A stretch of DNA of 64,000 bases from Anaeramoeba ignava BMAN (GCA_028826165.1 JAPDFW010000072.1:248001-312000); one strand, 5' to 3'; positions 13,886 to 37,268 are shown, counted from the stretch's first letter. Notes: a model not told the origin generated them from the letters alone. Numbers and translations are program-made.

Positions 13886-15881
13886 TCAATGCTTTTTCAA
13901 TTTTGGAATACCATAATCTTTCATTAACATAATTTTTGGAACAGTCATTTCATGCATAGCAGCTCTTATACCTTCACTACCCATACCTGAGTCCTTTATA
14001 CCTCCATAAACTTGAGCATCAACACGAGCAGAAGGAATATCATTAATAACAACACCTCCACATTCAACATTTTCATAAAATGAAAAGGCTCTTTTGAGAT
14101 TGTTTGTGTATAATCCTGCTTGCAATCCATATCTTGATTTATTAATTTTTGTTATCACTCCTTTCATGTTAGAAAATTTTTCAATATAAAAAACTGGACC
14201 AAAAACTTCATTTTGAGCAATTATGGAATTTTGATGAATTTTTTCTAAAATTGTTGGAAGATAAAAATTATTGATTCTTTGTCCTCCAACAAGAACTTTT
14301 GCTTTCTTTTCTTTTGCATTTTCAACCCAAGATTCAACTCTTTTAGCTTCATCAGTACTAATTAAAGGTCCAACATTCCATTCAAGTGGATTTTCATCTG
14401 GAAGCATTGGATCAACTGTTTTTAATAATTTTGTGAAATGAATCAATCTTTCTTTTAATTTATTATAAACTGTATCATGAAGATAAACTCTTTGAACAGA
14501 GATACAACTTTGGCCTGCTTGATAAAATGCACCGAAAATTATTCTTTTAGCGATTGTATCAAGATCGGTTTCAGCACAGTTGCATTTATCAACTACACAT
14601 GCTGCATCACCTCCTAATTCAAGTGTAACTTTTTTTTTTCCTGATAATGATTTGATTTTCCAACCAACAACATCACTTCCTATAAGATTATTTTTTTAAT
14701 TTTGATTTTGAATTTAATTTTAAATTTGATTTTGATTTTGATTTTAATTTTAATTTTGATTTTGATTTTGATTTTGATTTTAATTTTAATTTTGATTTTG
14801 ATTTTGATTTTGATTTTAATTTTAATTTTGAATTTGATTTTTGATTTTGATTTTGATTTTGATTTTGATTTTGATTTTAATTTTGATTTTAATTTTAATT
14901 TTGATTTTTATTTTGATTTTGATTTTAATTTTGATTTTGATTTTGATTTTGATTTTGATTTTGAATTTTAATTTTGATTTTGATTTTGATTTTGATTTTG
15001 ATTTTGATTTTGATTTTGATTTTGATTTTGATTTTAATTTTGATTTTGATTTTGATTTTGATTTTGATTTTGATTTTGATTTTGATTTTGATTTTGATTT
15101 TGAATTTTAATTTTGAATTTTGATTTTGATTTTTGAATTTGATTTTGATTTTGATTTTAATTTTAAAATTACCTGTAAAAGAAACCATTTTCATTCTATC
15201 ATCCTTAAGTAATTCCATTGCCAAATTATTTTCCATTGGAAGAACAGAAAAAGAATTTTTTGGAAGAGCAGTATTAGCCAAAATATCACCCAAAACAATA
15301 GCAGAAATAGGAGTACGTGGAGAAGGTTTGATAATAAAAGGATTACCAGTTGCAATAGCAGGAGCAATTTTATGAACAATTAAATTAATAGGAAAATTAA
15401 AAGGGGAAAACATAGCAATTGGTCCAATAGGGAATCTTCTTGTTGTTCCTTGATATCCTTGAGAGGACTTTGTGTATCCAAAATCTTGATATTCACCGTA
15501 ATTACGACCAGCTTCTTCACTGCAATTTTCAACTGTATCAATTGCTCTATTCATTTCAACTTGTGATATTTTTATTGGTTTTCCACTTTCCATTGTGATT
15601 AATGATGCAAGTTCATCTTTCCTTTCTCGAAATTGTTTTGCAATATCTCGCAATATATCTTTTCTTGCATGAATCGGTAAATCATTCATTGCTTTTCGAC
15701 TTTTGGAAACCGTTGTAATTGCTTCTTGTATTTCTTTTTTTTCTGCTAATGAAACTCTTGCTATTTTTTTCTCAGTGAATTTGTCAAAAACATCAAGGAA
15801 TTTATTAGTCATAACTTGCTTTCCTGCTATATAAAGTGGATATACTTCTTTTTTTATTGTTTGTTTTCTAATCAAATCCAT
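13886..15881 (-). CDS. NAD(P)-dependent aldehyde dehydrogenase, ALDH family 21/RNP123-like; one intron 14680-15172
   Basis: PFNFP, KPS, FTG|S across the splice, TLELGGDAA, GAFYQAGQSCISVQR (catalytic Cys), EVFGP, YGLQAG, YGGIKDSGMGSEG. Confidence 0.92.
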
Positions 15882-16172: not shown

Positions 16173-19100
16173 TTAATTTAATTTAATTGAATTTAAAATT
16201 TCATTTAATTTTTCATTTAATTTTTCAATCTTCTTTAAAGAAATTGGTATTTTCTCTCCATGATAAATTTGAGGTGAATTTTCATAGCAATTTAAAGCGT
16301 TTTTATAATGAAAAATAGCCTCATCCTTCTTATTCAAAATTTGATATACCTCAGCCACTTTTTGATATGATTTTGCAAGTAAATATAATCCTTTCCGAAA
16401 ATCTTTTCTGTGATGAAGAACATTCATATGGATTGAGTGAGCCAAATCATAATCCTTCTTCTTAAAGTATATTTTGGCGATTTCAAAGAGAATATTACAA
16501 TATCCTTGCAATAAAGGTGCTAAATTGTTCTGAGAATTCCTTACTTTTTTGAGTAGATCATCCAAATCAGATTCAGGATTCGAAATTTCCAATTTAATCA
16601 ATAATTTCAAGTGGAATCTAGAAACAATAATATATGTTAATCCTCTTTTTTTCATTTTTTCTAAGGTTTCAGTGATTAATTCCAACTTTCTTGAAAGAGT
16701 TATCGGTGTTTTGCAGAAAAAAACTTCAAAAATATTAATCAAACTTGAATATTTCTCATCCTTTTCATATTTTGGTCTTAATTCTTGGAATTTTGAGTAA
16801 TTATACTCGAATTCACTAGATGAACTTAATCCGAGTTTTTGGAAAATTACCAAACTAAAAACACAATGCTCCATGATTGAATAATCCTTCTTCAATTCCA
16901 CATACATTTTCAATGATCTTTGATGATAAGAAAGAGATTGTGAAAGATTGCCAAGTAAGTATGATGTATGTGCTAAATAATTAAGTGATTTTGCTACTAA
17001 AAATTTATCAGTTCGGGCAAAATAGTTTCCATGCTGAAGCGAAAAAAGATCATATGCTTTCTCATAATTTCCAAGCAAGCAATTAAGAATACCCTGATTT
17101 TCCAATGTTTGAAATGAAAGTAAACTTTTCTTAATTTGAAACATTTTTTTTTGAATGAATGAAATGACCATTTGAGCTGTTTCCTTCCCAAAAATGTTTG
17201 TGATTTCATCATGAAAATTGTATTGATCTACCAGATAATCTTTTGGGAAATTCTGTGTCAATTCGATTGAATTCTGAGCCATTTCAAGGTACTTTTGGCT
17301 TTTGTCAAATTTCATTTGATTCATGAAATTTATTGCTTGTTTGTTACAAAATTGTATAAAATCTGAAAATCCCAATTCATCCTTATGCATCATTTTCAAA
17401 AATTTCATTGATTCATTGAAAAGAAACTTTTTTGAATAACAAATGGAGATATTTTTCAATAAGAAATTGGTGATTTTTTGCTCCATTTTCAAATTAATAG
17501 CTTGAGAATACAGTTTCTCGCTCAAATTTAACGATTCATCAAATTTCATTTGTTTTATCAATAAACCTGATTTTTCTAGCAGTAAATCAAATTGATCCCT
17601 TTCATTTACGCTATTTGATACAATTTTATCAACATTCTGTAAAAGGATTTGTGATAGATCCATTTTTCCCAAATCAGAATAGAAATTTGCTAATTGAACC
17701 ATTTTTTGTACTTGATGTTTTGGATTCAAATTTCCAAAAAGCAGCATGAATTTTTCATTTGAATAAGAAGAAAATCCAAAAATATTTGATTCAATAATTG
17801 GTTTTGCTTTAAATTCCTTCTCAATTTCAATTGCATTTTTAAAGTTTTGTTCTTCATTGCAATAATCTGTATATTGATAAGGATCAAGAACACGGAAAAT
17901 AAATGAGTATTTTTGGTAATAATCCAAGAATATTTTTTTGCTTTCTTGAATAATCTCTTTGATTTCTGGATCTCTCACAAAAATCATCCAATTTTTAGCA
18001 AAAAATCTTTTGATACGAGTATGAAGAAAATAGAGGTAGTTTTTTTTGATTAAAATGAAAGATTTTTCAAATTGTTCAATTTTTTCCAAATTTTGAGCAA
18101 AATATTTTCTGAAAAATGGAGCACAAAATTTCTCAGAGAAGAAATATAATAAAATTACCCATTTTTGTTGTTCTTTGGCGAACATTTTGTTGAAAATACC
18201 AATAGCAATTTTGCGATTTATAATACTTCCATCACTTTTTCTTATTTCTATCATACTTTTTCTTAAAGAATCCATTTCTTCATTTTGATTTTGATTTTTA
18301 TTCTCTTTTTCATTTCCAATTTGATTTTGATTTTGATTTTCATTTTGATTTTCTTTTTCATTTCCAATTTGATTTTGATTTTGATTTTCATTTTTAATTT
18401 GATTTTTAATTTGATTTTGATTTTGATTTTGATTTTCATTTTCTTTTTCATTTTCATTTTGATTTTCAATTTGATTTTCTTTTTCATTTTCAATTTGATT
18501 TTGTTTTTGATTTTCAATTTGATTTTCATTTTGATTTTGATTTTCATTTCCAATTTGATTTTGTTTTTCAATTTGATTTTCAATTTCATTTTGTTTTTGA
18601 TTTTGATTTTCCATTTTGATTTTGATTTTGATTTTGATTTTTGTTTTTGATTTTGATTTTCATTTCCAATTTGAATCAATCTTGGTGATTTCTTTAAAAC
18701 AATCGATTTTGAAAGATCCTCAACAATAACAGAACGAGCAACTTGAAGCCAAAATGGATGTCTTTCATAAAATTCTGTAATTTGTTCAGTCGCTGTAATT
18801 AAATCAATTTCATAAATATTTTCAAATATAGAATCTTGAATAAAAGATGTTCCAATAACTATAATATTCTGAGGAAAATTCAAATCACGATATAATTTAT
18901 TCCAATTCGAAAATTCACCTTCTTCAGGAAAATCATCAAAAAATAATAAATGAGGGAAATTTGGAGAAAAAAGTGATTCAAATTTTTCTTGGATTTCTTC
19001 CGATGAGTATTTCTCACCTAAATAATCATATTCATGAGTCAAATGAGCAACAAACACACGCTGAATATCATTTATATTAGAAAAATCACCACAATTAAAA

Positions 19101-20656
19101 TAATGGAAAATGAATTGGGGATATTTTTCCCGAATTTTATTTGCAACAAGCTGACCAACAATTGTTTTTCCTGAATTTTTTGGACCGTAAATATATATAA
19201 AGTTGTTTCTTTGGAAGTCTATCTCTTCAATCATCATTTTGATCGATTCTGGAAGTTTTAGATCAGGCTTTTTAATAAAGGCAAAATTGGGGAAACTTTG
19301 TGGGAAATATTTTGCCATAATTTCAAAGTAATTTCGGTTTCTGTCATTAAGATGATATTCTTGTAGATATATTTCTGGATATCCAAAGAAATGGAAAAGC
19401 AAGTCAGGTTTGAATTGGAATTGGAATAGATATCGGTCTCCAATTTTCTGGTAGAAAGGCTTGATATTGGCCAAAGGAATTGTTGGCCAAAAGATGAATC
19501 TTTTTTTGATAAAATTATCTGTTTCCTTTTCGTTTTCAATTATTAGCATTTGTTTGTTTTTTGAAACCAAAACTGATTTTGATTTTGCGTTTTGTTTCAA
19601 AACTTGGATAATTTGCGTAAATTCGTTATTTGATAATGGCTTGTAATTTCTGTATATTTTCTTGTTCTGACAAACTTTTACAGTGCAACGTCCATTAAAA
19701 AATAATTTCTTCAAATAACCCAAAAAATCATCCTTTTCTTGGCTTGATATTGGGAGTCCGTATACTGGTTGTTGGATATCAGGCTCTTCATCATCCCAAA
19801 TAAAGGCCAACAACTGGATGTTATTTTCCCAAAAAGATTCTGCGATTGATTGAGGATTTGCAAGTTTAGTTTGCACTTTCTTTCTTAAATGGAATTGGAT
19901 TTTAGGATTTTTGATAAAAGGATCGAGATGGATAGAAAGATCACTCACATCAACAAATATCTCTTCGAGATCATTAGGCTTCTCTGCAAAATAGACGTTT
20001 TTTGGTTTTCTGCTAATATTCTTAGTTTCTTCAACTCCAATATAAATACTTCCTGGTATTTTTGTATTATTATTAAGTGCCGAGTAATTCAAGAACGAAA
20101 CTGCATATTCCACAATTTTGGAGATGACATCAGTGATAATAACAGGGTTTTTTGTGAATCCCTTGAATTCCACAAAGGAATTTTCGTGTAAATTTGGAAC
20201 CTCTTTCGAGATTTGTTCCGATTGAATAATTTGCATTTTTGGATCGTTTTGATCAATTTTTTTGCTTTCAGAAAGTTGGTTTGTAAAATGAACATAACTC
20301 TTATGGAATTGAGGCCAAAAATAATAGGGATAAATTTTATGGATGTTGTTTTCATATTGTCTTATTTTAAAAGTTTGATGGAAATCGAAAAAAATAGGTT
20401 TTGGAATGGTTGTTGGAATAAAAAAATTAACGGATTCTGCTCCAGTTTCATATCCAATTGTGAAAGTGTCTCCAAGTGGTGTTTCTTGGAAAATATACTT
20501 ATTTTCACTTAGTGAAACTTGATGGAAAGTTTTTCCAAAATCTAAAGTATTCAATAATTGAGTTAGATTGTTGATTTCTTTCATCTCAAATCCTTTTTGA
20601 TTTGTATTTAAAAATGCGAGGATTTTGCTTTGAACCAAATGTGCTTGTTGTGTCAT
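16173..20656 (-). CDS. Schlafen/AlbA_2 - STAND NTPase - TPR protein (NLR-like); frameshift within QN linker near 18610-18640
   Basis: [25 protein letters not shown] (AlbA_2); Walker A GPKNSGKT; Walker B LLFFDD; GxP-like HPFWL; MHD-like [10 protein letters not shown] in the downstream ORF; TPRs ([43 protein letters not shown]). No introns seen. Confidence 0.75.
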
Positions 20657-20760: not shown

Positions 20761-21964
20761 ATGATTTCTTTTCAAGATTTAAAAAATAAATTAGATAAAA
20801 AATATAATAATTTTTATTCTAATGATGAATTAACTCATTTTCATGATTCAGAAACAATAATAATTGATAATGGTTCATCAACAATTAAAACAGGATTTGG
20901 GGGAGATGATACACCAAGAGCTGTTTTTCCAACAATAATTGGAAGACCAAACAAAGAAAAAGTTGTAACAGGGTCTCCTTCAAAAGATTATTTTGTTGGA
21001 GATGAAGCAATTTCTAAAAGAGGAATTTTAAAACTTAAATATCCAATAGAAAATGGAATTATTACAAATTGGGATGATATTGAACATATTTGGCATCATA
21101 CTTTTTATAATGAATTAAAAATTTTACCTGAAGAACATCCACTTTTAATGACTGAATCACCTTTAAATCCAAAAGCAAATCGAGAAAAAACAACACAAAT
21201 TATTTTTGAAACATTTAATATTCCTAATTTTTATCTTTCAAATTCTTCATCTTTTAGCTTTATTTGCTTCAGGAAGAACAACAGGAATTGTTATTGAAAT
21301 GGGATATCACGTTTGTAATTCTGTTCCAATTTATGAAGGAAATGCTTTAAATGATTCAGTTTTAAGAATGAATATTGCAGGAAGAAATTTAACAAATTAT
21401 TTAATGAAAATATTAACTGAAAGAGGATATTCATTTATAACATATGCTGAAAGAGAAGTTGCTAGAGATATTAAAGAGAAATTATGTTATGTTCCATTAG
21501 ATTTTTATGAAGAAGTAGAAAAAGACAAAAATTCATATGGAATTGAAAAAAATTATGAATTACCTGATGGACAAATTTTTTCAACTGGAGATGAAAGATA
21601 TAGATGTACTGAACCTTTATTCCAACCTTCTTTTATTGGATTGTCTCAATTAGGAATTCATGAAATTATTTATAATTCAATTATGAAATGTGATGAAGAA
21701 ATAAGAAAAGAAATGTTTGGAAATATTGTTTTATCAGGAGGAACATCAATGTTTGAAGGAATTAAAGAAAGAATTGAAAAAGAAATTAAACAATTATCAC
21801 CAAAAGATATGAAAATCAAAGTTATTTCACCTCCTGAAAGAAAATATTCAGTTTGGATTGGAGGATCTATTTTATCATCTTTTCCATTTTTTAAAAACAT
21901 AACAATTTCAAAAGAAGAATATAAAGAATTTGGAAATTCAATTATTCATAAAAAATTCGTTTAA
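20761..21964 (+). CDS. Divergent actin paralog 1 (1-nt frameshift near 21247)
   Basis: [47 protein letters not shown] across two overlapping ORFs. Confidence 0.9.
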
Positions 21965-22016
21965 AATTAAAAAGAAATTAAATTTTTCATTTTTTTCTTT
22001 TAAAAATAAAATAAAA

Positions 22017-23175
22017 ATGAATTTTAAACAATTTTCAAATATTAATTTTGAAGAAATTGATGAAAATGAAACAATAATAATTGATAATGGTTCCTCAACA
22101 ATTAAAACAGGATTTGGAGGAGATGATACACCAAGAATTATTTTTCCATCAATAGTTGGAAGACTAAGACACCCTGAAATAATGACTGGATTAAATATAA
22201 AAGATTATTATGTTGGAGATGAAGCAATTTCTAAAAGAGGAATTTTAACACTTAAATATCCAATAGAACATGGAATTATTACAAATTGGGATGATATTGA
22301 ATGCATTTGGCATCATACTTTTTATAATGAATTAAAAATTTCACCTGAAGAACATTCACTTTTAATGACTGAACCACCTTTAAATCCAAAATCAAATCGA
22401 GAAAAAACAACACAAATTATTTTTGAAACATTTAATATTCCTAATTTTTATCTTTCAAATTCTTCAGTTTTAGCTTTATTACAATCAAAAAGAACAACAG
22501 GAATTGTTATTGAAATGGGATATCAAGTTTGTAATTCTGTTTCAATTCATGAAGGAAATGTTCTAAATGATTCAATTTTAAGAATGAATATTGGAGGAAG
22601 AGATTTAACAGATTATTTACAGAAAATATTATATGAAAGAGGATATTCATTTATAACATATGCTGAAAGAGAAATTATTAAAGATATTAAAGAGAAATTA
22701 TGTTATGTTTCATTAGATTTTTATGAAGAAATGGACTTATCAAATAACTCAAATTCTATTGAAAAAAATTATGAATTACCTGATGGACAAATTATTACAC
22801 TAGGAAATGAAATATTTAGATGTACTGAACCTTTATTCCAACCTTCTTTGATTGGATTTTCACAAATAGGAATTCATCAAATTATTTATAATTCGATTAT
22901 GAAATGTGATGAAGAAATAAGAAAAGAAATGTTTGGAAATATTGTTTTATCAGGAGGAACATCAATGTTTCAAGGAATTGAAGGAAAGAATTGAAAAAGA
23001 AATTAAACAATTATCACCAAAAGATATGAAAGTTGAAGTTATTTCACCTCCTGAAAGAAAATATTCAGTTTGGATTGGAGGATCTATTTTATCATCTCAT
23101 TATATTTTCAAAAATTTATCAATTTCAAAAGAAGAATATGAAGAATTTGGACCTTCAATCATTCATAAAAAATAA
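22017..23175 (+). CDS. Divergent actin paralog 2 (frameshift near 22981)
   Basis: Actin motifs; ATG 22017 matches the MNFKQFS start of other copies. Confidence 0.9.
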
Positions 23176-23245
23176 AATATTTTTCATTTTTCTTCATTTT
23201 TCATTTTTTCATTTTTCATTTCAAAAGAAATAATAAAATAATAAA

Positions 23246-24424
23246 ATGAATTTCAAAGAAACTTACTATTATTTCAATACTTATTTTAATGAATATGAAG
23301 AAAATGAACCAATAGTAATTGAGAATGGTTCATTTTCTATTAAAGCAGGTTTTGGAGGAGATGATGCACCAAGAGCAGTTTTTCCGACAATAGTTGGAAA
23401 ACCAAGACATTATGGAATAATGGCTGGAATGGATTCTAAAGATTATTATGTTGGAGATGAAGCAATTTCTAAAAGAGGAATTTTAAAACTTAAATATCCA
23501 ATAGAAAATGGAATTATTACAAATTGGGAAGATATTGAACATGTTTGGCATCATACTTTTTATAATGAATTAAGAGTTTCACCTGAAGAACATCCACTTT
23601 TAATGACTGAACCACCTTTAAATCCAAAAGCAAATAGAGAAAAAACAACACAAATTATTTTTGAAACATTTAATATTCCTAATTTTTATCTTTCAAATTC
23701 TTCAGTTTTAGCTTTATTAGCTTCAGGAAGAACAACAGGAATTATTATTGAAATGGGATATCAAGTTTGTAATTCTGTTCCAATTTATGAAGGAAATGCT
23801 TTAAATGATTCAGTTTTAAGAATGAATATTGGAGGAAAAGATTTAACAGATTATTTACAGGAAAATATTAAGAGTGAAAGAGGATATTCATTTACAACAA
23901 CATATGAAAGAGAAATTGTTAAAGATATTAAAGAAAAATTATGTTATGTTCCATTAGATTTTTGATGAAGAAATGGACTTATCAAATAATTCAAATTCTA
24001 TTGAAAAATTTTATGAATTACCTGATGGAAGTACTATTACAATAGGAAATCAAAGATTTAGAACTCCTGAACCTTTATTTCAAACCTTCTTTTATTGGAA
24101 TGTCTCAACAAGGAATTCATGAAATGATTTATAATTCAATTATGAAATGTGATGAAGAAATAAGAAAAGAAATGTTTGGAAATATTGTTTTATCAGGAGG
24201 AACATCAATGTTTCAAGGAATTAAAGAAAGAATTGAAAAAGAAATTAATGAATTATCACCAAAAGATATGAAAATCAAAGTTATTTCACCTCCTGAAAGA
24301 AAATATTCAGTTTGGATTGGAGGATCTATTTTATCATCTCTTTCAATTTTCAAAAATTTATCAATTTCAAAAGAAGAATATGAAGAATTTGGAAATTCAA
24401 TTATTCATCAAAAAATGTTTTTAG
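23246..24424 (+). CDS. Divergent actin paralog 3 (several 1-nt frameshifts)
   Basis: Actin motifs in ORFs 23246-23965 and 24100-24483. The paralog-like end TGT TTT TAG is at 24416-24424. Confidence 0.8.
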
Positions 24425-27400
24425 AAAAAGAAAAAAGAAAAAGAAAAAATTGGATGTTTTATTTGAATTTGTTGGATTTTTGATTTATGATTTGATAAAA
24501 AAAAAGGAGAGAGAAGAAATATTGAAGAAAATGGAATTAAAATATTAGTTTTTTTGCTTTTTCTTTTTTCTTTTTCTTTTTCTTTTTCTTTTTCTTTTTC
24601 TTGATTCTTGTTTAATTCAATATAAAGTTCTTCGATAATTTTTTTATATTTTTGTGAAAGGACAAATCTCTTTAATTTTTGTGTGTCTGTCAATAATCCA
24701 TTTTCAATAGTAAAAGGATCATGTTCAAGATGAATATTTTTGATAAATTCGAATCCTTTCAACTAAACAAATTTAAAAATTAAAAAATTAAAAAATTAAA
24801 AATTTGGATTTAAAATTAAAAATTAAAAATTTGGATTGAATACTTTGTTTTCTTTTGCAACTTGTTCAATTTCCTCAAGAACCTTATTCTTAACTTGTTG
24901 TAAATTGCAAATCTCTTGGTGATCTGTTTTAGTTATTGAATTTTCATCAAGATATTTTTGGATCACATCAAAATTTGGCACAACAACAGCAACAAGATAG
25001 TTTTCAAAGCTTGAACCATAAACAAAAATCTGACTAATTGATTTTGTTTTCATGTAAACAATTTCCAAGAAATCAGCAGAGAGATATTCTCCTTGAGCAA
25101 GTTTGAAAATATTTTTTTTCCTGTCGATAATACTTAATGTTCCATCAGAGTTCCATTTTCCAATATCTCCAGTTTTGAACCATCTGTCACTAGTGATAGC
25201 TTCATTTGTTTTTTCTGGATCCTTATAATATCCTTGGAAAACATTATCACCGCGTATTAAAATCTCTCCGACTTGATTTGTTTGATTTGAAATATATCCC
25301 ATTTCGGGAACATCAATAAGCTTGATTTCATTGCATGGTGAAATCACTCCACAATTACCAACAGAAAAGAAATCAACTGATCCTAATGATCCACTTGCTC
25401 CTGTTTCGCTCATTCCCCATCCTTGTATTACCGCATCCGAAATGCAAACGCGAAGGAATTCGTGATGTTTTGGTGATAATGGTGCTGATCCTGTAACCAT
25501 TACTCTGATTCTTCCTCCCAATCTTTTTTTGATTTTATCAAATACTAATTTGTTCCAAATTGGTGTATCATGTCCTTCTTTGATTGCCTTGAGTTTGTAT
25601 TTGTATGCTTGATCAAACATGAATTTTTGGAAAATTCCTCCTGATTCGATTGTGTTCATGATATGATCGTAAATTCGTGAAAATACTCTTGGTACACCTG
25701 GTAATAATGTTGGTTTTAATTCTTCAATGTCTTGACTTAGTTTTCTAATATCACCTCCAAAAAATCCTACTTGTCCTCCGTAGTAAACCATAAAATTTTG
25801 TAAGCTTCTCTCAAGTATGTGTGCTAGTGGTAAGTATGACATGTATATTTCTTCTTCTGCTTCTAATTTGTATTCCTTTTTTTATTTTTTTAAATATTTA
25901 TTTTGAATATTTATTTTATTTATTTTAAATATTTATTTTTGGATTGAATATTTATTATTTTAAATATTTATTTTTGGATTGAATATTTATTTTTGGATTG
26001 AATATTTATTTATTTTAAATATTTATTATTTTGAATATTTATTTTTGGATTGAATATTTATTTTTGGATTGAATATTTATTTATTTTAAATATTTATTTT
26101 ATTTATTTTAAATATTTATTTTAAATATTTATTTTATTTATTTTAAATATTTATTTTTGGATTGAATATTTATTTTAAATATTTATTTTAAATATTTATT
26201 ATTTATTTTTGAGTTTAAATTACTGAAGACCATGCTCCTCCAACCATTCCAGCAACTAAATTTTTATGAGTCATAATAACACCTTTTGGTAAATCAGTTG
26301 TTCCTGATGTATAAATAAGAGAAGCTAAATCATCTGTTGAAGGTGGTTCATGAGGAAGTTCATTTTGTTTTCCAAATTCAATCATTTCAGAAAATAGTTT
26401 AATAGTTAATCCTAAATCTTCTGCTGTTTTTTTAACATCTAAAGGAACTTCATCAATTGAAACAATAATTTTTAAGCTTGGACATTGTGAAGAAAATTGA
26501 GTTATTTTAGATATTTTATCAGAACTACAAACAACTAATTGCATATCAGAATGAGAAATAATAAATTTAGATGATTCTGCTCCTAATGTATCATAAAGAG
26601 CTACAGAAACCAAAGAATATGCATAACATGCATCTTCTGTTACTTTCCATTCAGTACAATTTTTGGAATAGATTCCTACAGTATTTCCCTTTTAATACAT
26701 TATTTATTTAAATATTTATTTCAAATTTAAATATTTATTTCTAATTTAAATATTTATTTCCAAATTTAATATTTATTTCAAATTAAATATTTATTTCAAA
26801 TTTAAATGTTATTTCCAATTAAATATTTATTTCAAAATTTAAATATTAATTAAATATTTATTTCTAAATTTTTAAATATTTATTAAATATTTATTTCAAA
26901 ATTTAAATATTTATTAAATATTTATTTTCAAATTTAAATATTTATTTCAAATTTAAATATTTATTTTGTTTTTAAATATTTATTTCAAATTTAAATAGTT
27001 TTAATTTTAAATTTAAATATTTTTTTAAATTTAAATATTTATTTAAAAATTGAAAAATAATTTTATTTATGTGAAGAAAATTTTATTTTAAATATTTCAG
27101 ATTTACAAAATTAAAATATTTATTTCAGAATTTAAATATAAATTTAAATATTTATTTCTAAAATTTAAATATTTAAAATTTAAATATTTATTTTCTAATT
27201 TAAATATTTATTTCCAATTTTTTAAATATTAATTAAATGTTTATTTCTAAATTTAAATATTTATTTAAATATTTATTTCAAATTTAAATATTTATTTCTA
27301 AATTAAATATTTATTTCTAAATTTAAATATTTATTTATTTAATTTAAATATTTATTTCTAAATTAAATATTATCAAATTTAAATATTTATTTCTAAATTA

Positions 27401-28433
27401 AATATTTATTTCAAAAATTTAAATATTTATTTCTAATTTAAATATTTATTTCAAAAATTAAATATTTATTTCTAAATTTAAATATTATTTCCAAATTAAA
27501 TATTAATTAAATATTATTTCTAATTTAAATATTTATTTCAAAATTTAAATATTTATTTCTAAATTAAATATTTATTTCCAATTTAAAATTTAAATATTTA
27601 TTTCCAAATTTAAATATTTATTTCAAATTTTAAGTATTTATTTAAATATTTATTTCCAAATTTAAATATTTATTTCAAATTTAAATATTTATTTCAAATT
27701 TAAATATTATTTCCAAATTAAATATTAATTAAATATTATTTCTAATTTTAAATATTTATTTCAAAATTTAAATATTTATTTCTAATTTAAAATGTTATTT
27801 CATAATTTAAATATTATTTCCAAATTAAAATGTTATTTCTAATTTAAATATTTATTTCAAAAATTAAATATTTATTTCTAAATTTAAATATTTATTTCAT
27901 AATTTAAATATTTATTTCAAATAAATATTTATTTCCAAATTAAATATTTATTTCTAAATTAAATATTTATTTCAAATTTAAATGTTATTTCTAATTTAAA
28001 TATTATTTTCAAAAAACTTTCCAAAAATCCAAAATAAATTTCATTTGAAATTAATTATCCAAAAAAGTGAATAATTTAAAAATAAGTTAATAAAATAGAA
28101 AAAAAGAATTTGAAATACCTTTTTCAACCCAAAACCACGAAAAGCAGAACCCAACCAAGTCCTTAATTCACCAAATTCTTTGTAAGTAATCCATTCATAA
28201 CTGCCTAAATTTTCTTTTTCTTTTTCTTTTCTTCTTGTTCCATATAATTTTTTATTAGAATATTTGCTTAAACTATTCTCAAGTATTGCATAAATTGTTT
28301 TTAAATGTGGCTCTGGATAAGTTGCTAATCCTTTCTCTTTACAAGTTAAATTTCGATAAACTTTTTCTTTCTCATCATAAAGAAAAGAGAAAACATTTTC
28401 TTTTAAATGATATTTTTTTATTGCTTGTTTCAT
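24421..28433 (-). CDS. Long-chain fatty acyl-CoA synthetase (ACSL/LACS-like), 4 exons; exact 3' end uncertain
   Basis: [64 protein letters not shown]. Introns at 26689-28118, about 25876-26223 and about 24763-24843. Confidence 0.92.
26700..28010. repeat. Degenerate ~19-20 bp AT satellite (AAATATTTATTTCAAATTT) in ACSL intron 1
   Basis: Visible tandem degenerate units. Confidence 0.85.
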
Positions 28434-28697
28434 TTCAAAATAAAATGATCTTTTATTTTTTAAAAAAAAGAAAATTTTTTTAATTTTTTTTTTATTTTTT
28501 TTTTTTTCCTTATTTATTTTGAGCTTTCAATTTTTTATTTTGAAATTTCAATTTAATTTTTAATTTAATTTTTATTTAATTAAATTTTTAATTGACAAGT
28601 TTTTATTTATTTATTTTTATTTTTATTGATTAATTTATAGCAAAAGTGATTAATTATTATTTTCTTTTATTTTAATTTTAATTTTAATTTAAATAAA

Positions 28698-29848
28698 ATG
28701 AATTTTAAAGAATATGATTATTTTGAAGAAAATGAAAAAATAATAATTGATAATGGTTCATCAACAATTAAAGCAGGATTTGGAGGAGATGATGCACCAA
28801 GAGCTGTTTTTCCATCAGTTGTTGGAAGACCAAAACATTATGGAGTTAATTTTATAACAATTCAAAAAGATAGATATGTTGGAGATGAAGCAATTTCTAA
28901 AAGAGGAATTTTAACACTTAAATATCCAATAGAAAATGGAATTATTACAAATTGGGATGATATTGAATGTATTTGGTATCATACTTTTTATAATGAATTA
29001 AAAATTTTACCTGAAGAACATTCACTTTTAATGACTGAACCACCTTTAAATCCAAAATCAAATCAGAGAAAAAACAACAGAAATTATTTTTGAAACATTT
29101 AATATTCCTAATTTTTATCTTTCAAATTTTCCATCTTTAGCTTTATTTGCTTCAGGAAGAACAACAGGAATTATTATTGAAATGGGATATCAAGTTTGTA
29201 ATTCTGTTTCAATTTATGAAGGAAATACTTTAAATGATTCAGTTTTAAAAATGAGTATTGGAGGAAAAGATTTAACAGATTATTTAAAGAAAATAATGAG
29301 TGAAAGAGGATATTATTTTTCAGCATATGCTGAAAGAGAAATTGTTATAGATATTAAAGAAAAATTATGTTATGTTTCATTAGATTTTGATGAAGACATG
29401 GAATTATTAAATAATTCAAATTCTATTGAAAGAAATTATGAATTACCTGATGGAAGTATTATTACAATAGGAAATGAAAGATATAGATGTACTGAACCTT
29501 TATTCAAACCTTCTTTGATTGGAATTTCTCAATCAGGAATTCATGAAATGATTTATAATTCAATTATGAAATGTGATGAAGAATTAAGAAAAGAAATGTT
29601 TGAAAATATTGTTTTATCAGGAGGAACATCAATGTTTCCAGGAATTAAAGAAAGAATTGAAAAGGAAATTATAAAATTATCACCAAAAAGATATGAAAAT
29701 CAAAGTTATTTCACCTCCTGAAAGAAAATATTCAGTTTGGATTGGAGGATCTATTTTATCATCTCTTTCATTTTTCAACAGAATAACAATTTCAAAAGAA
29801 GAATATGAAGAATTTGGAAATTCAATTATTCATCAAAAATGTTTTTAA
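28698..29848 (+). CDS. Divergent actin paralog 4 (frameshifts near 29065 and 29688)
   Basis: Actin motifs in consecutive ORFs; ends HQKCF-stop at 29848. Confidence 0.85.
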
Positions 29849-29930: not shown

Positions 29931-31089
29931 ATGAATTTTAAAGAATATTATTATAATGAAGAAATTCGATGAAAATCAAACAATGATAATTGATAATGGT
30001 TCATCAACAATTAAAACAGGATTTGGAGGAGATGATGCACCAAGAGCTGTTTTTCCAACAGTTGTCGGAAGACCAAAATATTATGGTGGGAATATTTTAA
30101 TATCTCACAAAGATAGATATGTTGGAGATGAATCAAGTTGTAAAAGAGGAATTTTAATTAAAAAATATCCAATAGAAAATGGAATTATTACAAATTGGGA
30201 AGATATTGAATGTATTTGGCATCATACTTTTTATAATGAATTAAGAGTTTTACCTGAAGAACATTCACTTTTAATGACTGAACCACCTTTAAATCCAAAA
30301 TCAAATCGAGAAAAAACAACAGAAATTATTTTTGAAACATTTAATATTCCTAATTTTTATCTTTCAAATTCTCCATCTTTATCTTTATTTGCTTCAGAAA
30401 GAACAACAGGAATTATTATTGAAATGGGATATCAAGTTTGTAATTCTGTTTCAATTTATGGAGGAAATGCTTTAAATGATTCAATTTTAAGAATGAATAT
30501 TGGAGGAAAAGATTTAACAGATTATTTACAGGAAATATTAAATGAAAGAGGATATTATTTTACAACAACAGCTGAAAGAGAAATTGTTAGAGATATTAAA
30601 GAAAAATTATGTTATGTTTCATTAAATTTTGATAAAGAAATGGAATTATTAAATAATTCAAATTCTATTGAAAAAAATTATGAATTACCTGATGGAAGTA
30701 TTATTACAATAGGAAATGAAAGATATAGATGTACTGAACCTTTATTCCAACCTTCTTTGATTGGATTATCACAAATAGGAATTCATGAAATAATTTATAA
30801 TTCAATTATGAAATGTGATGAAGAATTAAGAAAAGAAATGTTTGAAAATATTGTTTTATCAGGAGGAACATCAATGTTTCAAGGAATTAAAGAAAGAATT
30901 GAAAAAGAAATTAAACAATTATCACCAAAAAATATGAAAATCAAAGTTATTTCACCTCCTGAAAGAAAATATTCAGTTTGGATTGGAGGATCTATTTTAT
31001 CATCTCTTTCATTTTTTAAAAACATAACAATTTCAAAAGAAGAATATAAAGAATTTGGAAATTCAATTATTCATAAAAAATGTTTTTAA
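29931..31089 (+). CDS. Divergent actin paralog 5 (probable start 29931 with 1-nt frameshift near 29966)
   Basis: Full actin fold in ORF 29956-31089; upstream MNFKEY start as in paralogs. Confidence 0.9.
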
Positions 31090-31175
31090 AAATATTAAAC
31101 AAAAATTATTTTTCATTTTTTTCATTTTTCAATTCAATTCAATTCAAAAGAAAAAATATAAAATAAAATATAAAA

Positions 31176-32339
31176 ATGAATTTTAAACAATTTTCAAATA
31201 TTAATTTTGAAGAAATTGATGAAAATGAACCAATAGTAATTGAGAATGGTTCATTTTTTATTAAAGCAGGATTTGGAGGAGATGATGCACCAAGAGCTGT
31301 TTTTCCAACAATAGTTGGAAAACCAAAACGACAAGTCCAAATGGTTGGAATGGGTTCTAAAGATTATTATATTGGAGATGATGGTTATCATCCAAGAAGA
31401 GCATTAACACTTAAATATCCAATAGAAAATGGAATTATTACAAATTGGGAAGATATTGAACATATTTGGCATCATAGTTTTTATAATGAATTAAGAGTTG
31501 CACCTGAAGAACATCCACTTTTAATGACTGAACCACCTTTAAATCCAAAATCAAATCGAGAAAAAACAACAGAAATTATTTTTGAAACATTTAATATTCC
31601 TGATTTTTATCTTTCAAATTCTCCATCTTTAGCTTTATTTGCTTCAGGAAGAACAACAGGAATTATTATTGAAATGGGATATCAACTTTGTAATTCTGTT
31701 TCAATTTATGAAGGAAGTGCTTTAAATGATTCAGTTTTAAGAATGAGTATTGGAGGAAAAAATTTAACAGATTATTTAATGAAAATATTAAATGAAAGAG
31801 GATATTCATTTACAACAACAGCTGAAAGAGAAATTATTAGAGATATTAAAGAAAAATTATGTTATGTTTCATTAAATTTTGATAAAGACATGGAAATGTC
31901 TTACATTACAGATCCTCTTGAAAAAAATTATGAATTACCTGATGGAAATATTATTACAATAGGAAATGAAAGATATAGATGTACTGAACCTTTATTCAAA
32001 CCTTCTTTGATTGGAATTTCTCAAATAGGAATTCATGAAATTATTTATAATTCAATTATGAAATGTGATGAAGAATTAAGAAAAGATATGTTTGAAAATA
32101 TTGTTTTATCAGGAGGAACATCAATGTTTCAAGGAATTAAAGAAAGAATTGAAAAGGAAATTATACAATTATCACCAAAAAATATGAAAATCAAAGTTAT
32201 TTCACCTCCTGAAAGAAAATATTCAGTTTGGATTGGAGGATCTATTTTATCATCTCTTTCATTTTTTAACAGAATAACAATTTCAAAAGAAGAATATGAA
32301 GAATTTGGAAATTCAATTATTCATAAAAAATGTTTTTAA
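31176..32339 (+). CDS. Divergent actin paralog 6
   Basis: Intact 387-aa actin-like ORF. Confidence 0.95.
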
Positions 32340-32421
32340 AAATATTAAACAAAAATTATTTTTCATTTTTCATTTTTCAATTCAATTCATTTCAAAATAA
32401 AAATATAAAATAAAATATAAA

Positions 32422-33585
32422 ATGAATTTTAAACAATTTTCAAATATTAATTTTGAAGAAATTGATGAAAATGAACCAATAGTAATTGATAATGGTTCAT
32501 TTTTTATTAAAGCAGGATTTGGAGGAGATGATGAACCAAGAGCTGTTTTTCCAACAGTTGTTGGAAGACCAAGACATTATGGAATAATGGTTGGAATGAA
32601 TTCTAAAGATGGATATGTTGGAGATGAAGCAAGTTGTAAAAAAGGAATTTTAATTAAAAAATATCCAATAGAAAATGGAATTATTACAAATTGGAATGAT
32701 ATTGAATGTATTTGGCATCATACTTTTTATAATGAATTAAGAGTTGCACCTGAAGAACATCCACTTTTAATGACTGAACCACCTTTAAATCCAAAATCAA
32801 ATCGAGAAAAAACAACACAAATTATTTTTGAAACATTTAATATTCCTAATTTTTATCTTTCAAATTCTTCAGTTTTAGCTTTATTAACTTCAGGAAGAAC
32901 AACAGGAATTATTATTGAAATGGGATATCAAATTTGTAATTCTGTTTCAATTTATGAAGGAAATGCTTTAAATGATTCAGTTTTAAGAATTAATATTGGA
33001 GGAAGAAATTTAACAGATTATTTAATGAAAATAATGAATGAAAGAGGATATTCATTTACAACAACAGCTGAAAGAGAAATTGTTAGAGATATTAAAGAAA
33101 AATTATGTTATGTTTCATTAGATTTTGATGAAGAAATGGACTTATCAAATAATTCAAATTCTATTGAAAAAAATTATGAATTACCTTATGGAAGTACTAT
33201 TACAATAGGAAATGAAAGATATAGATGTACTGAACCTTTATTCCAACCTTCTTTGATTGGAATTTCTCAAATAGGAATTCATGAAATTATTTATAATTCA
33301 ATTATGAAATGTGATGAAGAATTAAGAAAAGAAATGTTTGGAAATATTGTTTTATCAGGAGGAACATCAATGTTTCAAGGAATTAAAGAAAGAATTGAAA
33401 AAGAAATTAAACAATTATCACCAAAAAATATGAAAATCAAAGTTATTGCACCTCCTGAAAGAAAATATTCAGTTTGGATTGGAGGATCTATTTTATCATC
33501 TCTTTCATTTTTTAACAGAATAACAATTTCAAAAGAAGAATATGAAGAATTTGGAAATTCAATTATTCATCAAAAATGTTTTTAA
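32422..33585 (+). CDS. Divergent actin paralog 7
   Basis: Intact 387-aa actin-like ORF. Confidence 0.95.
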
Positions 33586-33647
33586 AAATATTAAACAAAA
33601 AATTATTTTTCATTTTTTTCATTTTTCAATTCAATTCAAAATATAAA

Positions 33648-34814
33648 ATGAATTTTAAACAATTTTCAAATATTAATTTTGAAGAAATTGATGAAAATGA
33701 ACCAATAGTAATTGATAATGGTTCATTTTTTATTAAAGCAGGATTTGGAGGAGATGATGCACCAAGAGCTGTTTTTCCAACAGTTGTTGGAAGACAAAGA
33801 TATCAACTTCTAATGGTTGGAATGGGTTCTAAAGATGGATATGTTGGAGATGAAGCAGTTTACAAAAAAGGAATTTTAATTAAAAAATATCCAATAGAAA
33901 ATGGAATTATTACAAATTGGGAAGATATTGAACATGTTTGGCATCATACTTTTTATAATGAATTAAGAGTTTTACCTGAAGAACATTCACTTTTAATGAC
34001 TGAACCACTTTTAAATCCAAAAGTCAATAGAGAAAAAACAACACAAATTATTTTTGAAACATTTAATATTCCTAATTTTTATCTTTCAAATTCTCCATCT
34101 TTAGCTTTATTAACTTCAGGAAGAACAACAGGAATTGTTATTGAAATGGGATATCAATTTTGTAATTCTGTTTCAATTTATGAAGGAAATGCTTTAAATG
34201 ATTCAGTTTTAAAAATGAATATTGGAGGAAAAGATTTAACAGATTATTTAATGAAAATATTAAATGAAAGAGGATATTCATTTACAACAACATATGTTGA
34301 AAGAGAAATTATTAGAGATGTTAAAGAAAAATTATGTTATGTTTCATTAAATTTTGATAAAGAAATGGAATTATTAAATAATTCAAATTCTATTGAAAAA
34401 AATTATGAATTACCTTATGGAAATATTATTACAATAGGAAATGAAAGATATAGATGTACTGAACCTTTATTCAAACCTTCTTTGATTGGATTTTCACAAA
34501 TAGGAATTCATGAAATTATTTATAATTCAATTATGAAATGTGATGAAGAATTAAGAAAAGAAATGTTTGGAAATATTGTTTTATCAGGAGGAACATCAAT
34601 GTTTCAAGGAATTAAAGAAAGAATTGAAAAAGAAATTAAACAATTATCACCAAAAAATATGAAAATCAAAGTTATTGCACCTCCTGAAAGAAAATATTCA
34701 GTTTGGATTGGAGGATCTATTTTATCATCTCTTTCATTTTTTAACAGAATAACAATTTCAAAAGAAGAATATAAAGAATTTGGAAATTCAATTATTCATA
34801 AAAAATGTTTTTAA
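33648..34814 (+). CDS. Divergent actin paralog 8
   Basis: Intact ORF from MNFKQFS at 33648. Confidence 0.95.
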
Positions 34815-34873
34815 AAATATTAAACAAAAATTATTTTTCATTTTTCATTTTTCAATTCAATTCAAAATAAAAA

Positions 34874-36037
34874 ATGAATTTTAAACAATTTTCAAATATT
34901 AATTTTGAAGAAATTGATGAAAATGAAACAATAATAATTGATAATGGTTCATCAACAATTAAAACAGGATTTGGAGGAGATGATGAACCAAGAATTATTT
35001 TTCCATCAATAGTTGGAAGACAAAAACACCCTGGAATAATGGTTGGAATGAATATAAAAGATTATTATGTTGGAGATGAAGCAAAATCTAAAAGAGGAAT
35101 TTTAACACTTAAATATCCAATAGAACATGGAATTATTACAAATTGGAATGATATTGAACATGTTTGGCATCATACTTTTTATAATGAATTAAAAATTTTA
35201 CCTGAAGAACATCCACTTTTAATGACTGAACCACCTTTAAATCCAAAAGCCAATCGAGAAAAAACAACAGAAATTATTTTTGAAACATTTAATATTCCTA
35301 ATTTTTATCTTTCAAATTCTTCAGTTTTAGCTTTATTACAATCAAAAAGAACAACAGGAGTTGTTATTGAAATTGGAGATGGAGTTACTCATTCTGTTCC
35401 AATTTATGAAAGTTATGTTTTAAATCATTCAGTTTTAAGAATGGATATTGCAGGAAGAGATTTAACAGATTATTTAATGAAAATAATGACTGAAAGAGGA
35501 TATGCATTTACAACAGCATATGAAAGAGAAATTATTAAAGATGTTAAAGAAAAATTATGTTATGTTTCATTAGATTTTTATGAAGAAATGGAATTATCAT
35601 ATATTTCAAATACTCCTGAAAAAAATTATGAATTACCTGATGGAAGTATTATTACAATAGGAAATGAAAGATATAGATGTACTGAACCTTTATTCAAACC
35701 TTCTTTTATTGGATTGTCTCAACAAGGAATTCATGAAATGATTTATAATTCAATTATGAAAGATGATGTTGATATAAGAAAAGAATTATATGGAAATATT
35801 GTTTTAACAGGAGGAACATCAATGTTTCCAGGAATTAAAGAAAGAATTGAAAAAGAAATTAAACAATTATCACCAAAAAATATGAAAGTTGAAGTTATTT
35901 CACCTCCTGAAAGAAAATATTCAGTTTGGATTGGAGGATCTATTTTATCATCTCATTATATTTTCAAAAATTTATCAATTTCAAAAAAAGAATATAAAGA
36001 ATTTGGAAATTCAATTATTCATAAAAAATGTTTTTAA
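34874..36037 (+). CDS. Divergent actin paralog 9 (retains GDGVTH loop)
   Basis: Intact 387-aa ORF. Confidence 0.95.
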
Positions 36038-36104
36038 AAATATTAAACAAAAAATTATTTTTCATTTTTTTCATTTTTCATTTCAATTCAATTCAAAATA
36101 AAAA

Positions 36105-37268
36105 ATGAATTTTAAACAATTTTCAAATATTAATTTTGAAGAAATTGATGAAAATGAAACAATAATAATTGATAATGGTTCCTCAACAATTAAAACAGGA
36201 TTTGGAGGAGATGATGAACCAAGAATTATTTTTCCATCAATAATTGGAAGACCAAGACATTATGGAATAATTGTTGGAATGAATATAAAAGATTATTATA
36301 TTGGAGATGAAGCAAAATCCAAAAGAGGAATTTTAACACTTAAATATCCAATAGAACATGGAATTATTACAAATTGGAATGATATTGAACATGTTTGGCA
36401 TCATAGTTTTTATAATGAATTAAGAGTTGCACCTGAAGAACATTCACTTTTAATGACTGAACCACCTTTAAATCCAAAAGCCAATCGAGAAAAAACAACA
36501 GAAATTATTTTTGAAACATTTAATATTCCTAATTTTTATCTTTCAAATTCTTCAGTTTTAGCTTTATTACAATCAAAAAGAACAACAGGAGTTGTTATTG
36601 AAATTGGAGATGGAGTTACTCATTCTGTTCCAATTTATGAAGGAAATATTCTAAATGATTCAGTTTTAAGAATGGATATTGCAGGAAGAGATTTAACAGA
36701 TTATTTACAGAAAATAGTGTGTGAAAGAGGATATGCATTTACAACAACAGCTGAAAGAGAAATTATTAGAGATATTAAAGAAAAATTATGTTATGTTTCA
36801 TTAGATTTTTATGAAGAAATGGAATTATCAAGTTATTCAATTTCTTTTGAAAAAAATTATGAATTACCTGATGGACAAATTATTACAATAGGAAATGAAA
36901 GATTTAGAACTCCTGAAGTTTTATTTCAACCTTCTTTTATTGGAATGTCTCAATCAGGAATTCATGAAATAATTTATAATTCAATTATGAAATGTAATGT
37001 TGATATAAGAAAAGAATTATATGGAAATATTGTTTTAACAGGAGGAACATCAATGTTTCCAGGAATTAAAGAAAGAATTGAAAAAGAAATTAAACAATTA
37101 TCACCAAAAGATATGAAAATTGAAGTTATTTCACCTCCTGAAAGAAAATATTCAGTTTGGATTGGAGGATCTATTTTATCATCTCATTATATTTTCAAAA
37201 ATTTATCAATTTCAAAAAAAGAATATAAAGAATTTGGAAATTCAATTATTCATCAAAAATTCGTTTAG
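36105..37268 (+). CDS. Divergent actin paralog 10 (retains GDGVTH loop)
   Basis: Intact 387-aa ORF. Confidence 0.95.

Follow-up and report, generated by a model that had tools for sequence, protein, structure and literature searches.

The window analysed here is a 64,000-nucleotide (nt) stretch of the genome of the protist Anaeramoeba ignava BMAN (positions 248001-312000 of contig JAPDFW010000072.1 in the 42.8-Mb assembly GCA_028826165.1). It contains two long, overlapping open reading frames (ORFs) on the minus strand, ORF1 and ORF2, which we consider best explained as one gene of about 1,490 codons, intact save for indels left by the assembly. This gene would encode an NLR-like protein of the STAND type, with a nuclease-based role in defence suggested by analogy; we judge the chances of this explanation to be about even. 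From the N-terminus, the predicted product would comprise a ~150-residue region of unknown fold, a divergent AlbA_2 domain with an Ex4ExK motif, a stretch of ~250 residues and an NB-ARC-like P-loop nucleoside triphosphatase (NTPase). These would be followed by an N/Q/E-rich insert of ~120 residues encoded by an (AAAATC)n array, a helical region at the position of the winged helix, and an array of TPRs.

Domain composition of ORF1 and ORF2

At the local base composition one stop codon is expected per 11 codons. Open frames of 666 codons (the meaningful part of ORF1) and 813 codons (ORF2) are improbable under this expectation (P < 1e-26 each), and both halves therefore represent real coding sequence. 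The ORFs overlap by 350 nt in different frames, and their fused reading comes to ~1,490 amino acids (aa), matching the size given in a first-pass annotation of the sequence, which had interpreted the locus as a Schlafen RNase-STAND-TPR immune receptor. Profile matches were obtained for each domain of that layout, i.e. (i) an AlbA_2/Schlafen-like domain, (ii) a STAND-type P-loop NTPase and (iii) TPRs; the AlbA_2 and STAND matches, on which the interpretation had been staked, were both found, and it is not refuted. We regard the observation on this locus as largely real, and its interpretation as a Schlafen-STAND-TPR receptor as reasonable and partly supported, given that it draws on borderline domain matches, a repaired frame and functional analogy.

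The NTPase module of ORF1 is STAND/NB-ARC-like, with ORF1 terminating within the helical domain of the module, because its alignment with a template of this type is collinear and its hidden Markov model score was reached by none of 2000 shuffled sequences. The template, an alignment of 13 bacterial NB-ARC-TPR proteins, was matched by hhalign with a probability of 88.8% (P 2.5e-6), residues 473-656 lying on columns 8-204; within this alignment the hhhTSR strand is represented by IIVIGTS and the GLPLA helix by HPFWL. In a Pfam scan of a 210-aa piece covering the NTPase, the matches were ATPase_2 (E 1.3e-5), NB-ARC (E 4.9e-5), AAA_22, AAA, nSTAND3 and NPHP3_N, with the NB-ARC score (23.1 bits) falling 0.4 bit short of the cut-off (23.5). 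The NACHT profile PF05729 was not reached (E 0.24; 11.7 bits vs a cut-off of 26.7). The Walker A and Walker B motifs reported in the first-pass annotation were both located. Its GxP-like motif aligns as HPFWL and not at the SPRL site adjoining the linker.

Upstream of the NTPase, ORF1 carries a segment that, to judge from profile comparisons, is quite probably a genuine but divergent AlbA_2 domain. It includes the previously noted ExxxxEFK motif in the form E158-x4-E163-F-K165. Human SLFN11 has Ex4ExK as its catalytic signature, and prokaryotic Schlafen tRNases have Ex4(E/D)xK (PMC13056530). The Pfam family SLFN_AlbA_2 (PF04326) was matched in a 470-aa piece of ORF1 with E 2.3e-5 and 25.3 bits, the gathering cut-off being 25.3; a 190-aa piece scored 25.0 bits, just under this value, and the locus reached 24.9 bits in the genome scan (25.4 with its neighbours). 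When the whole genome was scanned in six frames, this locus was the sole AlbA_2 match (E 7.4e-4). The same 60 residues were matched by an independent profile built from 32 AlbA_2 domains of Bacteroidota genomes: E158, E163 and K165 fall on its E/E/K columns and GVEE (E209/E210) on its GVdD strand, and the score was reached by one of 2000 shuffled sequences. Alignment with AlbA_2 by hhalign gave P 8e-5 and extended, at low confidence, to column 94. Together with the Pfam result, this upholds the AlbA_2 affinity proposed in the first-pass annotation, in a borderline and partial form. No Pfam, NCBIfam or PHROGs family, SIR2 included, was detected between this segment and the P-loop (residues 225-470) at E up to 10.

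In a search of ESM Atlas by protein features with residues 1-460 (19277-20656), the ten best hits with a Pfam assignment all belong to AlbA_2 or its clan. Their score is only 0.81, and we therefore treat this result as a lead and not as evidence. The nearest clusters are Schlafen-like proteins of Nucleocytoviricota (giant viruses), followed by those of molluscs and chordates, and the former provide a weak hint of a possible viral source.

ORF2 starts with 111 N/Q/E-rich residues, and its helical region occupies the place where a winged helix would be expected. The TPRs assigned to it earlier are borne out by Pfam (TPR_12, E 3e-14); as assembled, they lie in a frame other than that of the NTPase. 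The winged-helix MHD-like motif fared less well: its 12 letters are present (18035..18000), but the score is no better than chance. In the bridged alignment the motif and the stretch preceding it are collinear with the winged-helix columns (P 0.26-0.47), but neither hhalign nor a sub-profile gave a significant result. When ORF1 and ORF2 were joined by X residues, the hhalign score rose only from 48.5 to 50.8. An ESM Atlas model of ORF2 (predicted template modelling score 0.53) has, for residues 115-420, AAA_16+TPR_12, TIR-TPR and WHD_MalT+TPR clusters as its nearest neighbours. The template modelling scores are at most 0.53 (the value for WHD_MalT+TPR), and we take these predicted neighbours as a lead.

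Table 1. Features of the ORF1/ORF2 locus (positions counted from the first nucleotide of the window)
Feature	Position	Strand	Details
ORF1	20656..18263	minus	797 aa; meaningful part 20656..18659, ~666 aa
ORF1, constituent parts	residues 1-666	minus	N-terminal region of unknown fold, AlbA_2-like segment, residues 225-470, P-loop NTPase
Schlafen/AlbA_2-like segment	19985..20185	minus	residues 158-224; profile positions 1-49 of 118
Ex4ExK motif	20162..20185	minus	E158, E163, K165
GSIYIGVEE strand	20027..20053	minus	E209/E210 on the acidic pair of the AlbA_2 GVdD strand
NB-ARC-like P-loop NTPase	18689..19240	minus	residues 473-656; from upstream of Walker A to the GLPLA-equivalent helix
Walker A, GPKNSGKT	19163..19186	minus	residues 491-498
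Walker B, (H)LLFFDD(F)	18929..18952	minus	LLFFDD, residues 570-575
HPFWLQVA	18737..18760	minus	on the GLPLA (GxP) helix of NB-ARC; His replaces Gly
GenBank 44-nt 'intron', GTTCTG...AAAG	18692..18735	minus	70.5% A+T; model ends at TGA 18662-18660
(AAAATC)n hexamer array	18282..18665	minus	~64 units, 79% matches; read as N/Q/E-rich linker
Frame-break zone	18605..18643	minus	two +1 slips relative to the 6-nt period
ORF2 (GenBank P0002)	18614..16173	minus	813 aa
ORF2, constituent parts	18614..16173	minus	111-aa linker, ~190-aa helical region, TPRs to the C-terminus
TPR repeats with Pfam support	16281..16997	minus	TPR_10, residues 540-573; TPR_12, TPR_2 and TPR_1, residues 707-779

The frame break in the hexamer array

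The hexamer array is strictly 6-periodic apart from two +1 slips placed 27 nt apart, the first at an A5 run near 18638, the second at ggaaaatc near 18611; across the 54 units inside ORF2 there are none. The N-Q phase (AAT-CAA) follows the ORF1 frame on entry into the array, the third frame between the slips and the ORF2 frame afterwards. ORF1, which aligns to template columns 8-204, ends just past the first helices of the NTPase helical domain; ORF2, which has no N-terminal domain of its own, begins at column 210 when aligned alone. Besides the two slips, no further stop or frameshift was found across 4.4 kb. Taken at the sequence level, this geometry (collinear columns, a shared N-Q phase and exactly two +1 slips) fits a one-gene reading. 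The first-pass annotation had likewise proposed a single gene broken by indels in the linker; the break does lie in the N/Q linker and its geometry is suitable, but GenBank annotates two proteins, i.e. P0001 (650 aa, "chromosomal replication initiator protein DNAa") and P0002 (813 aa). These two-gene models, and the DnaA name given to the first of them, look wrong.

The assembly was generated from R9 nanopore reads (ABruijn, Racon, Nanopolish and two rounds of Pilon), and the genome has an A+T content of 80.65% (PMC11550330). The two slips would most likely be residual indels of this procedure. We consider it somewhat probable that they are an assembly artefact and ascribe a smaller share to a real break, the remainder being left to other explanations. 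If they are an artefact, the locus would show how a large gene in this assembly can escape notice when indels persist in a microsatellite that codes for protein.

An assembly error would be in keeping with the state of the ten actin copies next to the locus, four of which are broken by a total of six frameshifts, some of them changes in the length of A-runs and others single G insertions. The frame-broken copies, all on the plus strand, lie at 20815-21961, 22017-23172, 23246-24417 and 28713-29839 (region 20815-29839), and the six copies at 29968-37265 are intact. The broken copies may be either pseudogenes or unpolished repeat copies. On the other side of the locus, an aldehyde dehydrogenase gene has a 490-nt intron (14682-15171, minus strand; GTAATT...TATAG) made up almost entirely of ~78 (AAAATC) units, with five slips as against none in the 54 units of ORF2. 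As the N/Q linker is built of the same hexamer, one microsatellite family appears to occupy both an intron and neighbouring coding sequence.

Alternative explanations

Several observations weigh against an intact gene with an AlbA_2 effector. Two adjacent slips are odd for random error, and real mutation would account for them equally well; GenBank, as mentioned above, annotates two genes. The Pfam scan of the entire 797-aa ORF1 gave no AlbA_2 match, and the score obtained with the shorter piece stands exactly at the threshold and covers only positions 1-49/54 of the 118 in the profile. The hhalign probability for AlbA_2 is just 61%, and the third acidic position is Glu (GVEE) where AlbA_2 domains have Asp (GVdD). 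Moreover, many bacterial AlbA_2 proteins are annotated as DNA-binding regulators rather than nucleases. The winged-helix score, with the P values given above, was reached by 236 of 2000 shuffled sequences. AlphaFold single-sequence models had a mean confidence (predicted local distance difference test, pLDDT) of 33 for residues 1-470 of ORF1 and 45 for residues 115-470 of ORF2, with values below 50 in the winged-helix region. Finally, no homologue of ORF1, ORF2 or residues 130-400 was found in a word-indexed search of 5.8 billion clusters, nor was any found by phmmer against 1.84 billion protein representatives or by a PDB sequence search; conservation and covariation are therefore not usable. 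There was no paralogue in the genome itself and no relative in viral or metagenome contigs. Scans of the genome with NB-ARC and ATPase_2 revealed no family of like genes, the other matches being short P-loop sequences, and scans with NCBIfam and PHROGs returned nothing useful. No Avs model of PADLOC was matched; its only hits, PsyrA (8e-4) and mad8 (0.02), are short and unrelated to Schlafen, and the PsyrA match (residues 334-376) was set aside as short and without support.

If the frame break is real, the locus would be either a very recently inactivated pseudogene of such a receptor or a gene split in two, one part encoding an effector-NTPase with a Lys-rich tail and the other a QN-TPR protein starting from the ATG at 18614. 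This is a minority possibility of real weight, since the two slips persist in an Illumina-polished assembly, ORF2 has its own ATG besides its GenBank model, and a single-copy orphan belongs to a class that is often short-lived; the frame-broken actin neighbours, whose lesions lie partly off homopolymers, may also reflect true regional decay. However, polishing is weak in low-complexity sequence of 80% A+T, and no second lesion has accumulated in 4.4 kb despite the high density of stops expected there. In addition, ORF2 would be left without an N-terminal domain, and the STAND NTPase of ORF1 would be truncated within its helical domain. Far less likely is a single gene free of sequence error, in which an intron or a programmed frameshift would join the frames, or the 44-nt intron modelled in GenBank would be followed by read-through of a TGA. 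An intron was considered at the break because that of the aldehyde dehydrogenase neighbour consists of the same hexamer, and the 44-nt intron does lead into the ORF2 frame with one TGA between. Yet the array is devoid of GT, and each of the five GTs immediately upstream is followed by T at +3, a position at which U2-type donors almost always have a purine; the single verified local donor is GTAATT. The 44-nt segment is coding-like in its A+T content, in contrast to the introns of A. ignava (91.86% A+T; PMC11550330). With its GTT donor it is probably spurious, a gene-prediction artefact, because it cuts into the NB-ARC-aligned helix and the model then stops at the TGA listed in Table 1. An intron across the break was thus rejected on donor sequence and A+T content, and -1 programmed frameshifting because neither slip has a slippery heptamer of the form X XXY YYZ. 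Read-through would be an ad hoc solution and was likewise discarded. The terminators at the locus are TAA, the actin copy that was checked ends in TAG, and there was no sign of sense TGA.

Other alternatives concern the identity of the domains. It is unlikely that the AlbA_2 match is a chance or convergent motif, which would leave a STAND/AAA+-TPR scaffold with an N-terminal module of another kind and no nuclease. Such a view could appeal to a score that equals the cut-off, with only half of the profile matched, and to our own estimate that a protein of the same length and composition would be expected to contain ~0.3 copies of ExxxxExK. An ESM value in the range of 0.81 is attained by shuffled proteins in a third of cases, NCBIfam and PHROGs contain no corresponding match, the PADLOC hits are limited to the two named above, and the AlphaFold model is uninformative. 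Against it, the same 60 residues, with their catalytic columns aligned, were singled out by four partly independent tests, the genome-wide six-frame E-value is the one given above for a sole match, and a position N-terminal to a STAND NTPase is the usual place of an effector. The GenBank name 'chromosomal replication initiator protein DnaA' would make the protein an ATPase of the AAA+ type resembling replication initiators, a possibility that we regard as negligible. Its basis is a weak P-loop similarity (Bac_DnaA, E 0.1; orc1/cdc6 TIGR02928, 16.7 bits vs a cut-off of 181; DnaA NF009087, 12.5 bits vs 657), but all of them fall far short of the cut-offs and concern the Walker A region only, and the alignment with NB-ARC is longer and much better. 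The gene carries TPRs and has neither DnaA domain IV nor the winged helix of ORC; a DnaA/ORC identity was rejected on the scores and is effectively refuted.

Comparison with known nuclease-armed STAND proteins

Three known cases, missed by the first-pass annotation, already establish that an AlbA_2 effector can be combined with a STAND scaffold. The antiviral STAND proteins SAMD9/9L of metazoans contain SAM, AlbA_2, SIR2, P-loop, TPR and OB domains, the antiviral Avs9 of bacteria has the same composition without SAM, and both kill or shut off translation via the acidic site of AlbA_2 (PMC12680541). bNACHT34, described by Kibby et al., is a NACHT protein of bacteria that carries a Schlafen RNase domain at its N-terminus (10.1101/2022.07.19.500537). 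In the light of these precedents the novelty of the A. ignava gene is therefore reduced. The study of SAMD9 and Avs9 reports finding no such proteins in protozoa, algae, plants or fungi (PMC12680541), and a protist example would therefore be new.

The precedents of SAMD9/9L, Avs9 and bNACHT34 suggest, by analogy, that the TPR end of the putative one-gene product may hold the NTPase off until a ligand is bound. Nucleotide-dependent oligomerisation could then activate the AlbA_2 domain, if it is indeed a nuclease, on tRNA or rRNA, and the cleavage would stop translation, so that the protein might act as a conflict or defence system, provided that the gene is intact in the organism. If it is both intact and expressed, a protist allied to Metamonada would have combined AlbA_2 with a STAND-TPR protein independently, as a third case besides SAMD9/9L of metazoans and Avs9 of bacteria, and the protein might be directed against giant viruses or serve to police Desulfobacter symbionts via tRNA cleavage. 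We consider this full scenario unlikely.

SAMD9/9L, Avs9 and bNACHT34 are the nearest analogues of the A. ignava protein, which on paper functions as they do but is a member of none of these groups. With SAMD9/9L it shares the order, from the N-terminus, of an AlbA_2 domain, a STAND-like P-loop NTPase and TPRs, the retention of the acidic catalytic signature and, if it is one gene, the very large single polypeptide. Unlike SAMD9/9L, it has no detected SAM, SIR2 or OB-fold and no sequence similarity to these proteins, its NTPase matches NB-ARC and ATPase_2 best, and a QN microsatellite insert lies inside the module. Pfam scans of ORF1 and ORF2 yielded no SAM or OB family (ORF2 ends in TPRs), and neither phmmer, against the same representatives as above, nor the PDB sequence search indicated kinship of the NTPase-TPR core with SAMD9 or Avs9.

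Avs9 is comparable as a STAND-TPR protein whose AlbA_2 effector is N-terminal, and its catalytic residues E14, D19 and D45 have counterparts in E158, E163 and E209/E210 of A. ignava, E65 of Avs9 being the fourth of the set. The A. ignava protein differs in being eukaryotic, in having no detected SIR2 or OB domain and no PADLOC Avs match, and in its ~150 extra N-terminal residues. bNACHT34 likewise combines a Schlafen-type effector with an NLR-related NTPase, whereas the A. ignava NTPase is closer to NB-ARC (E 4.9e-5) than to NACHT (E 0.24) and its sensor repeats are TPRs. The Schlafen RNases (SLFN11/12/13/14 and prokaryotic Slfn) share the Ex4ExK motif, an AFAN-like helix and the GV(D/E)(D/E) strand; in contrast to them, the A. 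ignava protein matches only the first half of the Pfam domain, and a STAND-TPR part replaces the helicase or Ig-like part.

The NLR-like NB-ARC-TPR proteins of bacteria and fungi are similar in that Walker A, Walker B, the hhhTS strand and the GLPLA helix are collinear and TPR_10/TPR_12 repeats are present. The A. ignava protein departs from them in its AlbA_2-like effector, in an NB-ARC score 0.4 bit below the cut-off and in a winged-helix/MHD region that is not demonstrable. STAND receptors armed with nucleases are currently regarded as immune modules that bacteria and animals have in common. If our interpretation is correct, the locus would be a candidate gene of innate immunity in an anaerobe that is free-living and harbours symbiotic bacteria, and a protist AlbA_2-NB-ARC-TPR protein would add a data point for the repeated convergent assembly of the architecture that SAMD9/9L and Avs9 represent.

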